A stretch of 62,926 bases of DNA, counting the filler, from Octopus bimaculoides (Eukaryota): assembly GCF_001194135.2 (NCBI RefSeq). It is 4 parts of 4 records of this genome, joined end to end, with 100 filler letters (N's around TTAATTAATTAA, not from the genome) between each part and the next. Parts side by side here need not be neighbours in the genome. Positions count along the whole stretch, not along the records: positions 1 to 23,466 come from NC_068981.1; 3 more parts are not named here. The stretch is one strand, 5' to 3'. The notes under the pieces were generated by a model. It made no database searches. It saw only the letters and a program-made list of their open reading frames with translations, and was not told the origin of the DNA. The translations under genes were made by a program, and so were the position numbers. This document shows, piece by piece, positions 2,385-15,573 of the stretch; position 1 is the stretch's first letter, and the number at the start of each line of letters is the position of its first letter.

Positions 2385-2414
2385 CAACTGTAGATTCAAC
2401 TTCCGACGGTTTTT
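2385..2414 (-). CDS. 30-nt micro-exon (E)KPSEVESTV
   Basis: ttttgactttcgttcag|AAAAACCGTCGGAAGTTGAATCTACAGTTG|gtgagt; phase 1-1. Confidence 0.9.
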
Positions 2415-2763
2415 CTGAACGAAAGTCAAAATAAAATAAAATATTTACGTTGCTTAATTCGTTCGCATACAAATATAACTTTGAATTTACGTAAATAACT
2501 TTAGGTATTTTTATTATGATAAATGTATTAAATATAACTTTTCGAGCTTCATTTAACTGATACATGTTTATGTATGTCGTTCACATCTTTTGCAAGTATT
2601 ACAATTTATTAAAAGTAGAAACATTTCCAAAATATTTTCTCATGAATGCACAAGGTCATTTTTGATTTTATATTTTATAATATGCAGAAAGTGTAGTATA
2701 TTATTCTAGAAAAACCTATTATTAATGTTGATGAACCTTATAAAGTTGCTTTAAAGTGCTTAC

Positions 2764-2793
2764 CTATGCGAGATTCGGTCTCTGTAACAATTT
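2764..2793 (-). CDS. 30-nt micro-exon (E)IVTETESRI (A-type variant)
   Basis: ttaatttcacag|AAATTGTTACAGAGACCGAATCTCGCATAG|gtaagc; phase 1-1. Confidence 0.88.
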   Translation of the reverse strand, partial: KLLQRPNLA

Positions 2794-3308
2794 CTGTGAA
2801 ATTAACAATGTGTTCAATTAACTTTTGTTTTCGTGAATTAACAAAATATTAAATAGTCTAGGCGCAATAAAATGTATCAATAAATTTACACGGAAATATT
2901 GATCGGGGTACTTTTTTTAAGTATAACTCACTCTGAATATAATGATTTAAACTTAACTTAATGCAACTTACGTTCAGTATTTATTGCATTTTTGAGAGCG
3001 CCTGGTATAATGGCTTGTGTGTTCTCTTAAGATCGACATTCTGACAGGGGTTCCGTTGTGTCCTTGACTAAAGATGTGTAATAATGTGATCTAAAGAGTT
3101 AACAATCGGGAAGGACTCATTCTCAGTCGCTTAAATGCCGAGCTATGTTCAAAACGTATTGAAATGTAGGCTCTTGAGATACTATATATTTTACTATATA
3201 TATAGTTTATACAATTAATTTACGTTACATATTAATTCATATTAAGACAAATTATACTACTGGTATCTATACTAGAAAAATAATGATGAGAATATAATTT
3301 AGCGGGAA

Positions 3309-3342
<34 letters not shown>

Positions 3343-3377
3343 CTCTATTTTATGAAAACTAATTAGAAAACACTTAC

Positions 3378-3407
3378 CAACTGTAGCTTCAACCTCAGAA
3401 GGTTGTT
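3378..3407 (-). CDS. 30-nt micro-exon (E)QPSEVEATV (D-type)
   Basis: cgtattcag|AACAACCTTCTGAGGTTGAAGCTACAGTTG|gtaagt. Confidence 0.9.
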
Positions 3408-3778
3408 CTGAATACGAATTATATAGAAATAGAAAAAAGAAACCATTTAAGAACTACTCGTCTACATACACTTTACGAAATATTTTTCATTTTCTCAATC
3501 TCATATTGGTAGTGAAGTTAAGAAACAGGTTGCAATGAATTACTTATTGAAAATTGTTCAGTAGTTGTTAATAACTGATAAGAATTTGTTTTAAACTGGA
3601 TACACTTTATGATATTCTACATTACTCAATAAGTGTTCATCAATAATCCGAAGGCATTTATGATAAGGTATTTCTAATATTTCCAAATGTATGTAAATGG
3701 GTTTGAATACATTTACACAGTATATAGCATAGAATTTCTGATCTATTGTGGTAATTTCTTAAGTGGAAAATTGCTCAC

Positions 3779-3808
3779 CTCTGGGACGCTCTTCCTGCGC
3801 CACAATAT
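3779..3808 (-). CDS. 30-nt micro-exon (D)IVAQEERPR (C-type)
   Basis: aatttcacag|ATATTGTGGCGCAGGAAGAGCGTCCCAGAG|gtgagc. Confidence 0.9.
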
Positions 3809-4535
3809 CTGTGAAATTAATGAAACATTATTGCAATTTCGTATCAAGCATTTGCGAATATAAATCTAGTAAGAATATTAGAACTAATGGATGCCTGGGA
3901 ACGATAGAAAGCATTACCAATTAACAATAAACATAGGTTTTGAAGGAAGTAATTTTTCCTTTCAATTCCTGTGAAAATATTCTAATATTTCAAATACACA
4001 CAGGCTTTATAATTATATAAAAGCATTCAGCACAAACATTGTACTTTCGTAAGAGCTTATATTATGAAAACAGCAACGTTAGTTTCAAATCCTAACGTAA
4101 CTAAATTACAGACATTATTCTGGGCATATAGCACGATAGAATATGTAATGTATAACAAAGAATTGTCATAATAACTAGCATATTCGAAAACAGACATTAA
4201 CCATTACAGTATTAATCATAACATTATATAATATGTCCACTACACTTATTCCCTAGAATATGTATTGTATTACAATTCCATCTACATTTTGTATATTATC
4301 TACAAAATACTTATATGGCAAAAAAAAATGACAAATATGGTTTTTAACAACTTTGTGAAGGCAATATTAAAATTATCATCCTGGCTATCAAATAGAAAAC
4401 ACAGTCCTTAAATGTGACATATAAAGGTTCAAAATATTTATCTTTTATTAGCAACGTAGAATATAATAAAACTCTACACAAGAACATATCAAGATATCAA
4501 AGCGTAATCACGTGAGAATAAATTATCTCACTCAC

Positions 4536-13841: not shown

Positions 13842-13871
13842 CAACTGTAGATTCAATAGAAGCAAATATGT
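13842..13871 (-). CDS. Atypical 30-nt micro-exon (D)IFASIESTV
   Basis: ctaatacgtaag|ACATATTTGCTTCTATTGAATCTACAGTTG|gtgagt. It is exactly 30 nt, open in phase 1 and has the family 3' half, but the acceptor is weak (no polypyrimidine tract). Confidence 0.55.
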
Positions 13872-13989
13872 CTTACGTATTAGTTCGTAGCTAGGCAAAT
13901 TATATAATTAATCTTTATTCGAATTAATTTAATAGATAAAAATATAAAGAATGATATATTTTCATTAAAACTACTTAGGAAACACTTAC

Positions 13990-14019
13990 CAACAGTGGCG
14001 TCGACCTCAGAAGGTTGTT
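13990..14019 (-). CDS. 30-nt micro-exon (E)QPSEVDATV (D-type)
   Basis: ctatgttcag|AACAACCTTCTGAGGTCGACGCCACTGTTG|gtaagt; one synonymous difference from 7669-7698. Confidence 0.9.
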
Positions 14020-14200
14020 CTGAACATAGAATAAAAAGATTGTGACAATAGAGAACTGACCTCCAATACAATGTAAAAACAAATATATGTAAAATTATGT
14101 TAATGATTGTTTAACTACACTAATTTTCCGGAAAGAGTTCAATTCTATAACAGGTTAGGTTTGCAAGCTATATCTATCCATGTATGATATATATATAAAT

Positions 14201-14250
<50 letters not shown>

Positions 14251-15225
14251 ATATAGATGATGATCATAATCATGATCGTGATCATGATGGTGATGATGAT
14301 GATGACGTTGATTGCTTCATCTTGTCAGATGTTAGCCATCTCACATTCAGCCTAATTCTGCTGCTTTACTTTTATCTTGCAATGTACGGATTTTCCCTCG
14401 CCATAGAGCTTTATAAATTACAAAATGAATCAATAAAGGAAATAATAGCGAGACGTCTGTACCCTATTGGATTTAAGTGGCGAAACTTTGTAAAATACAT
14501 TGCCCCTCTCTCGGCCGCCATAGAAGGTTCCAGTGGCAAGTATTGCATGATGACAGACACTATTTTCACTAGAAATTTTACGTTAGACCTCATTTTTCCT
14601 ATAAGAGCTGCATTTCCCACGGCTTTGCCAGAAATAACACGAGCCTCTTCTACCCTTCGTGAAAGGTACTTAACCAATACATGGTTCCCTAACAAATATC
14701 AACATTCCAGGCCAGAAATCTTGAGCTGCTGCCTCACTACCGGCTGCAGTCTATATTCAAATAATACATAAACTATATTCAAATAATACATAAAAGTTAA
14801 ATGCAGAATGTATTCCGGTTTAACTAGCATACGTCACTTACGTGAGAAAAAATGCTTTTCTTTCGACTCTAGTCTTTGCAACGCAAATTTTGAAATCATG
14901 TGAACATTCTTTACAAAGATTATTGGATGACATAATACAACGTTAAATTAAAAAGTTATACGTTTCTAACTTTTCAATAAAATACTTATGCGAGAAATGG
15001 CATATGTGCTGTTTACTACAAATTTATTATATGAAAGTTACTGTAACACGCATTCAACCAATTGAGCATATACTATCATTCAGATATGTAACTAAACAAA
15101 CTGACGGCACATTATTCTTTACCATCGACGTAGAATTAGCAAGAAACTAAAGCATAAAATGTTATGCCTTCCTATGTTCAACAAGCAGAAACGACGAAAT
15201 CATTTAATAATAATCTCTCACTCAC

Positions 15226-15255
15226 CAACTGTAGATTCCACCTCAGCCCGTGTTT
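15226..15255 (-). CDS. 30-nt micro-exon (E)TRAEVESTV (B-type)
   Basis: ctttcactag|AAACACGGGCTGAGGTGGAATCTACAGTTG|gtgagt. Confidence 0.9.
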
Positions 15256-15543
15256 CTAGTGAAAGATAAAAGGTATGTATATCTCTATCAGAGTGATAAC
15301 ATACAGAAAATAATGCTGACGAACACTAAATATAGTGAGGAAGAACATGTTAAATATTTTTCTGTTATCCAAAAGATAAAAACATTATAAAGCCATTTTT
15401 TACTAAAATTAATAATCCTTTCATAAATGACGAAACGATGGGCTAGATTTTAATTTAAATTTATAATTAAATAATGCTGAAGACTTAGTAATTTGTATAT
15501 CGATGACGATATATTGTATACGGAAAATTACGCAGTAACTTAC

Positions 15544-15573
15544 CTGTGCGTGTTACTTTTTCCGTTACAACTT
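15544..15573 (-). CDS. 30-nt micro-exon (E)VVTEKVTRT (A-type)
   Basis: aattccacag|AAGTTGTAACGGAAAAAGTAACACGCACAG|gtaagt. Confidence 0.9.

Follow-up and report, generated by a model that had tools for sequence, protein, structure and literature searches.

We analyzed a 62,926-nucleotide (nt) stretch of DNA from Octopus bimaculoides (assembly GCF_001194135.2), hereafter the window, which consists of four joined parts. All results concern the first part, positions 1–23466 from NC_068981.1, an AT-rich piece (~31% G+C) that is dense in (TA)n, (CA)n and similar microsatellites and whose sole run of N is at 6647–7448. This piece carries an array of at least 15 microexons on the minus strand, each exactly 30 nt long and encoding ten amino acids (aa) (Table 1). 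The scan of the minus strand took as exons any 30 nt between YAG and GT that stay open when read in phase 1. Each microexon has a pyrimidine-rich tract with CAG or TAG in front of it and GTGAG, GTAAG or GTATG behind it. All 15 are in phase 1-1, start with AA, AG or AT and end with G, so that each junction restores a Glu or Asp codon (GAA, GAG or GAT); since their length is a multiple of three, any exon joins any other in frame. The minus strand gave 14 matches to the strict exon signal and the plus strand 2, compared with an expected 0.43 and a maximum of 3 in 200 Markov shuffles. The introns between microexons are 0.29–3.2 kilobases (kb) in the part of the gene seen, and most of the coding sequence seen consists of symmetric exons of ≤36 base pairs (bp) with long introns between them. 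A scan for further phase 1-1 exons, at all lengths between 12 and 240 nt, found nothing convincing.

Table 1. Microexons of the array in transcript order, followed by other mapped features of the locus.
Feature	Position	Strand	Unit	Exon type	Peptide	Remarks
X1	19935–19906	−		2	EKPSDVDSTY	ttcag acceptor, gtgagt donor; upstream of the array first described
X2	18782–18753	−		2	EKLFAVKSTV	flanks homologous to B1, B2, B3
A1	15573–15544	−	1	1	EVVTEKVTRT	4–5 nt differences from A2, A3
B1	15255–15226	−	1	2	ETRAEVESTV	
D1	14019–13990	−	1	2	EQPSEVDATV	
A2	10916–10887	−	2	1	EIVTEKVTRT	
B2	9270–9241	−	2	2	ETRSEVESTA	
C2	8531–8502	−	2	1	DIVTQEERPR	
D2	7698–7669	−	2	2	EQPSEVDATV	
A3	5443–5414	−	3	1	EIVTEKVTRT	
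B3	4565–4536	−	3	2	ETHSEVESTV	
C3	3808–3779	−	3	1	DIVAQEERPR	
D3	3407–3378	−	3	2	EQPSEVEATV	
A4	2793–2764	−	4	1	EIVTETESRI	older two-exon unit
B4	2414–2385	−	4	2	EKPSEVESTV	older two-exon unit
Candidate last coding exon	805–750	−		2-derived		good acceptor; reads ETVHAVETSVAESYIILK; TGA at 752–750
Switch zone	8376–8443		2			matches unit 1 below and unit 3 above; inferred crossover point
Near-identical tract	6337–6646					309/310 identical to 13444–13753; ends at gap
Near-identical tract	7647–7773					126/127 identical to 13968–14094; around D2 and D1

Two exon types alternate along the array, and exon distance matrices recovered both the types and the classes A, B, C and D. Type 1 comprises A1–A4, C2 and C3; these exons are all preceded by TTAATTYCRCAG, start with A(G/A/T)(A/G)TTGT and encode the pattern E/D-I/V-V-T/A-x-E-x-x-R-x. 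Type 2 comprises B1–B4, D1–D3, X1 and X2; most of them end with GA(A/C)(T/G)C(T/C)AC(A/T)GTTG followed by GTRAGT, and their peptide pattern is E-x-x-S/A-E/D-V-E/D-S/A-T-V. This alternation suggests that the oldest unit was a two-exon, 20-aa diad. The differences between A and C (11–14 nt) and between B and D (6–12 nt) define a four-exon tetrad, A-B-C-D; between tetrads, 1–5 nt differ per exon. An earlier sequence-only reading of this DNA had ordered the units as A-B-D, A-B-C-D, A-B-C-D and A4-B4. The exon scan returned the same order and every exon then named except one, called 'E', which is reclassified below. With X1 and X2 the array also reaches beyond the coordinates given at that time, to at least 19935. 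The flanks of X1 are homologous to those of B4 (2329–2447 with 19850–19967, 70%). Unit 4, X1 and X2 are copies of greater age and divergence.

Self-blastn of the dust-masked piece revealed that the units, which are 4.3–6.3 kb long, share more than exons. Long repeats pair 3719–4671 with 8444–9380 (80.5%), 5140–5513 with 10617–10987 (81–84%), 5658–6646 with 12826–13753 (78% over ~1 kb) and 7528–8375 with 13857–14718 (77–78%). Short self-matches were also present around 3317–3412, 7608–7703 and 13930–14024, and around 5411–5491, 10884–10976 and 15541–15632. Homologous kb-scale introns thus occur in the same order in different units, with identity of 72–85%, and every pair of flanking introns claimed earlier to be homologous was recovered. 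These data support tandem duplication of multi-exon blocks together with their introns. With an intron divergence of ~20%, the block duplications are old.

Substitutions in the exons of these copies are mostly synonymous. Nei-Gojobori counts on in-frame exons were made in three comparisons, which share data and are not independent. Units 2 and 3 differ by 8 synonymous and 4 non-synonymous changes (dS 0.34, dN 0.045, ω 0.13; P = 0.002, binomial test of the excess of synonymous changes), units 1 and 2 by 7 and 3 (ω 0.12, P = 0.004), and units 1 and 3 by 8.5 and 4.5 (ω 0.14, P = 0.007). In the intron alignment of units 2 and 3, 245 of 1247 ungapped columns are mismatched (19.6%). Exons of the same two units evolved more slowly than that (12/120, P = 0.01), and non-synonymous sites are ~4 times less diverged than introns (4/91 versus 245/1247, Fisher P = 7e-5), whereas synonymous sites are indistinguishable from them (8/29, P = 0.34). 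Indels are many in introns and absent from exons, and conservation around each exon extends ~40 nt upstream and ~15 nt downstream. Selection maintains exon length, splice sites and peptide sequence. The purifying selection proposed earlier therefore holds, with a pooled dN/dS of 0.12–0.14 and exon substitution that differs from that of introns. Individual exon pairs vary. A2 and A3 differ at three sites, all synonymous, and D1 and D2 at one synonymous site, as had been described; the statement that divergence is mostly synonymous applies to the pooled exons (8 of 12 changes) but not to B2/B3 (one synonymous, two non-synonymous) or C2/C3 (no synonymous, one non-synonymous).

The synonymous excess (dN/dS ~0.13) and the significantly slower change of non-synonymous sites relative to introns, together with uniform exon length and intact AG/GT signals amid indel-filled introns and the strand bias of exon matches (14 versus 2), are difficult to reconcile with a non-coding origin, in which the 30-mers would not be expressed exons but would belong to a dead gene or to a dispersed or satellite-like element. 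We consider such an origin very unlikely, even though microsatellites and repeats are abundant in the region, no protein homologue was found in the database search described below, and the exons are known from genomic sequence alone.

Comparison of the units also revealed that unit 2 is a mosaic. From 8444 upward (C2, the B-C intron, B2 and A2, both with their flanks, and the intron before A) it resembles unit 3, and from 8375 downward (the C-D intron and D2) it resembles unit 1. For example, D2 differs from D1 at one site and from D3 at five, and the introns after D1 and after D2 are copies of each other. The unit 3-like segments are 80–84% identical to unit 3 and the unit 1-like segments ~78% identical to unit 1; this similar divergence (77–84%) fits a single event. 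Besides, two tracts (309/310 and 126/127 identical) sit in a background of ~80% identity and are too long to have arisen by chance (0.8^300); they appear to indicate later gene conversion. This dual affinity of unit 2 (to unit 3 across A-B-C, to unit 1 across the C-D intron and D), along with the near-identical patches, agrees with the mosaic unequal crossing-over or gene conversion that had been suggested. Unit 1 itself has no C exon: the B-proximal part of its B-D intron can still be aligned with the B-C introns in units 2 and 3 (61–64%), and in a local alignment a search for a C relic scored no better than shuffled background. Because the B-C intron homology is kept without such a relic, C was probably deleted there.

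Two introns of unit 2 contain additional sequence. The intron between A2 and B2 carries an inverted repeat (9413–9808 and 10163–10442) with arms of ~400 bp that are 87–90% complementary and a spacer of 354 nt. It is absent from the paralogous intron between A3 and B3 (848 bp versus 1616 bp) and looks like a foldback or miniature inverted-repeat transposable element (MITE)-like insertion. The intron between D1 and A2 holds ~1.8 kb (10988–12825) that its paralogue, the intron between D2 and A3, lacks; the first kb is a compound microsatellite of (TA)n, (TG)n and (CATA)n, and ~12.0–12.8 kb is non-repetitive with 37% G+C.

The gap at 6647–7448 lies within the intron between D2 (7669) and A3 (5443). 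No exon or frame crosses it, and the symmetry of the exons preserves the frame regardless of its content, which may include an unseen exon. Its left flank aligns up to 13753 and its right flank (from 7528) to 13857 onward, and these two positions lie 103 bp apart in the ungapped paralogue, in the same order and orientation. This colinearity plausibly supports the order and orientation of the scaffold join. The 79 bases at 7449–7527 have no counterpart in the paralogue and are unit-specific, so the gap content is not merely the missing 103 bp. Identity to the paralogue climbs toward the gap, from ~80% at 5713–5982 to 90–94% at 6183–6382 and 309/310 in the last tract, and a near-perfect repeat at the contig end likely caused the assembly break.

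The presence of a gap in the array, the colinearity of contig 1–6646 with 7608–13753 and the near identity of the final 310 bp before the gap to 13444–13753 are features that an assembly artefact would also produce, with the units being stacked allelic haplotypes or mis-scaffolded copies of a true locus with fewer units. However, units 1 and 2 lie within a single ungapped stretch (7449–23466), which makes the duplication independent of the gap. For most of their length units 2 and 3 share just 72–85% identity, and they are also set apart by kb-scale indels and by 12 differences in 120 exon positions (four amino-acid changes), a divergence far above the normal allelic level. In addition, nothing after unit 2 corresponds to unit 4 or to the terminal-exon candidate. 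An artefact of this kind is extremely unlikely, and units 1 and 2 on one stretch and ~20% intron divergence between units 2 and 3 speak against the stacked haplotypes that the sequence-only reading had named as a possible objection.

Taken together, the ordered paralogous exons, the homologous introns and the constraint on the exons agree with the earlier proposal that the protein grew by kb-scale duplication of multi-exon blocks. We believe that positions 805–19935 are very probably the repetitive part of a predicted spliced, minus-strand protein-coding gene which grew by tandem exon-block duplication. In the mechanism that we propose, a two-exon diad would have given rise to the four-exon tetrad A-B-C-D, and the tetrad would then have been copied in tandem, introns included. 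Unit 2 would be an unequal-crossover recombinant between a unit 3-like copy (A, B and C) and a unit 1-like copy (the C-D intron and D), with the switch at 8375–8444; such a crossover is expected to yield a recombinant middle unit with a copy of the inter-unit intron on either side. Unit 1 may subsequently have lost its C exon, and insertions into introns and short patches of gene conversion may have followed; unit 2 also gained the inverted repeat in its A-B intron and, ahead of A2, the ~1.8 kb of intronic sequence rich in microsatellites. Product length would change in evolution by unequal recombination and between isoforms possibly by skipping of cassette exons.

Several observations weigh against tandem growth of a protein-coding gene as the explanation of this locus. 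The gene, like its exons, is known here from the genome alone, and the selection test covers 30–40 codons in comparisons that overlap. The 309/310 tract, being at a contig end, is possibly an assembly effect instead of conversion. No candidate first exon or start codon was found at 19.9–23.5 kb, the region scanned, and the 5' end of the gene would thus lie outside the window. The 150-aa concatenate of the 15 exons had no homologue in a search of 5.8 billion proteins, and its Pfam and PDB-sequence searches gave sub-threshold noise only. Its overall fraction of P+E+V+K is 0.49, below the per-exon cutoff of 0.54 that PEVK_Finder uses for titin PEVK exons (PMC6469411); that of P+E+V+T is 0.61.

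Two exon-like sequences deserve separate description. At the 3' side, the exon at 805–750 is type 2-derived; its donor has turned into CT, and eight extra codons precede the TGA. An AATAAA poly(A) signal is present at 577–572, ~175 nt downstream of that stop codon, and the flanks of the exon are homologous to the B1 unit (633–839 with 15084–15288). It is possibly the last coding exon of the gene, but could equally be a dead exon. Within unit 1, the sequence called 'E' (13871–13842, minus strand) had been taken as an exon, an assignment that we do not retain. Its last 13 nt and gtgagt donor are identical to those of B1, B3 and B4, and the ~65 nt of intron downstream are also B-type (13790–13856 with 2333–2399, 80.6%), whereas the initial 17 nt are intronic and recur after D2 in unit 2, and the acceptor, AAG, lacks a pyrimidine tract. 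The frame of 'E' is open (DIFASIESTV), which may be fortuitous. 'E' is probably a chimeric relic, that is, a rearrangement junction that halved a type 2 exon.

With regard to the product, the concatenate is rich in E (23%), V (17%), T (16%) and S (9%); charged residues make up 38%, and the net charge is −23. Judging only by its composition and the regularity of its repeats, it might be an acidic, low-complexity, disordered spacer or spring-like segment in the style of PEVK or PEVT, an assignment that we hold tentatively and with somewhat less than even confidence. Naming the gene from this concatenate was rejected, as it had no match in the protein database, Pfam or PDB sequences. A metagenome-contig scan with the conserved type 2 exon/donor 19-mer returned three matches, none with an acceptor 30 nt upstream, and these were ascribed to chance. 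A likeness to the decapeptide of mussel foot protein-1 (KPS…TY) was dismissed as coincidence: that protein is basic and the peptide here is acidic.

How the exons would be used is a further question. Symmetric, equal-length exons keep every subset in frame, the introns are long, exon-adjacent intron sequence is conserved, and micro-exon genes vary through alternative splicing (PMC10526429). It may be, then, that transcripts take a subset of exons or units, as cassettes or in a mutually exclusive manner, and that duplication diversifies isoforms and not protein length. We consider this unlikely, because the splice sites are strong and uniform and look constitutive, and because the peptides of paralogous exons are nearly the same (A2 = A3, D1 = D2), so that swapping them would add little diversity. 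A somewhat different idea, doubtful though slightly less so, is that the array represents a new lineage-restricted family in which each 30-nt phase 1-1 microexon encodes one decapeptide and in which length and order are set by cassette splicing together with frequent recombination and conversion. If true, this would be a system resembling micro-exon genes outside flatworms and invisible to current annotation. A literature search on 30-nt exon arrays or decapeptide-per-exon genes found nothing relevant.

Tandem growth by exon-block duplication has parallels in several known systems. In mechanism the closest analogue is the titin PEVK region, which has many short exons with one repeat each, multi-exon block duplication or triplication, and changes in exon number (PMC6469411, citing Bang et al. 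2001). The PEVK-C block triplication of human TTN and the triplicate region of nebulin share with the octopus locus short in-frame exons, charged E/V-rich repeats (disordered there and probably so here) and intron-inclusive block duplication. PEVK exons are ~75–90 nt, in contrast to the 30 nt and 10 aa here, and the sequence here is T/S-rich. It recalls the 'PEVT' composition of C. elegans TTN-1, a likeness for which a literature search found no source. Searches of the protein database, Pfam and PDB sequences gave no titin homology and no match to PPAK/PEVK repeats; the unit borders here carry no long interspersed nuclear element (LINE), and no open reading frame (ORF) with an Ig or Fn3 domain is present in the 23 kb, the gene extending past the window.

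Schistosome micro-exon genes (MEGs) have exons of 6–81 bp, mostly a multiple of three, and introns of 0.1–5 kb, and are poorly served by automatic annotation (PMC10526429). The octopus locus resembles them in its very short exons with long introns between. However, MEG exons vary in length, mostly being 15 bp, and are not arrays of paralogous repeats, and MEGs encode small secreted proteins with a signal peptide that evolve fast, compared with a dN/dS of ~0.13 between the paralogous exons here; no signal-peptide exon was found within the window, nor any candidate first exon at 19.9–23.5 kb.

In tropoelastin and fibrillar collagen, exons belong to one phase class (1-1 in elastin, 0-0 in collagen), genes grow by exon duplication, and cassette-type splicing is possible. 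The single phase class and growth by duplication are common to the octopus array, but these proteins are built of Gly, Pro, Val and Ala instead of Glu, Val, Thr and Ser, their exon sizes differ, and there is no sequence similarity. In the spider Flag silk gene, as Hayashi and Lewis are said to have described in 2000, exon-intron units are iterated and their homologous introns have been partly homogenized by recombination or conversion. Iterated units with homologous introns are found here as well, but Flag exons are large, with hundreds of GPGGX codons, and Flag introns are more similar than exons, whereas here exons are more conserved except in the two conversion patches. Membership in the titin PEVK, micro-exon, elastin, collagen or Flag families is not supported, although features of micro-exon genes are partly present. 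The locus does belong to the class of tandem exon-cassette duplications, with ordered paralogous exons, symmetric phase and coding constraint.

No new principle is involved, as block exon duplication is already known from the genes for titin, nebulin, elastin, collagen and silk. As a record of repeat-protein growth, the locus is unusually regular, running from exon to diad, tetrad and tandem tetrads. A recombinant unit and the relic of a breakpoint, both of which bear witness to the mechanism, appear to be preserved in it, and the putative conversion patches suggest that exchange among units went on after duplication. Arrays of 30-nt exons evade gene prediction, and no protein model matches the peptide; such genes are therefore probably under-counted in AT-rich invertebrate genomes.

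Several other features of the piece were observed. A scan against Rfam, introns included, gave no RNA families. A (TA)n-rich array of ~370–500 bp at 16900–17400, in the intron between X2 and A1, cross-matches other TA microsatellites and dominates unmasked dot plots. Two unusually long ORFs, 14241–14771 (plus strand, 176 aa) and 14411–14695 (minus strand, 94 aa), lie within the intron between B1 and D1, in a block common to the intron between C2 and D2, where they are broken. They have no Pfam matches and probably arose by chance or derive from an old transposon. The only recognizable protein domain of the piece is a reverse transcriptase fragment of the non-long-terminal-repeat (non-LTR) type (Pfam RVT_1) at 22287–23466 on the plus strand, which a frameshift splits into ORFs at 22287–22823 and from 22888 to the end of the piece. 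This segment has ~45% G+C compared with ~31% elsewhere, and its closest relatives are eukaryote-like contigs in ENA, NCBI and Logan at 50–65% identity; a cuttlefish protein matches at 41%.

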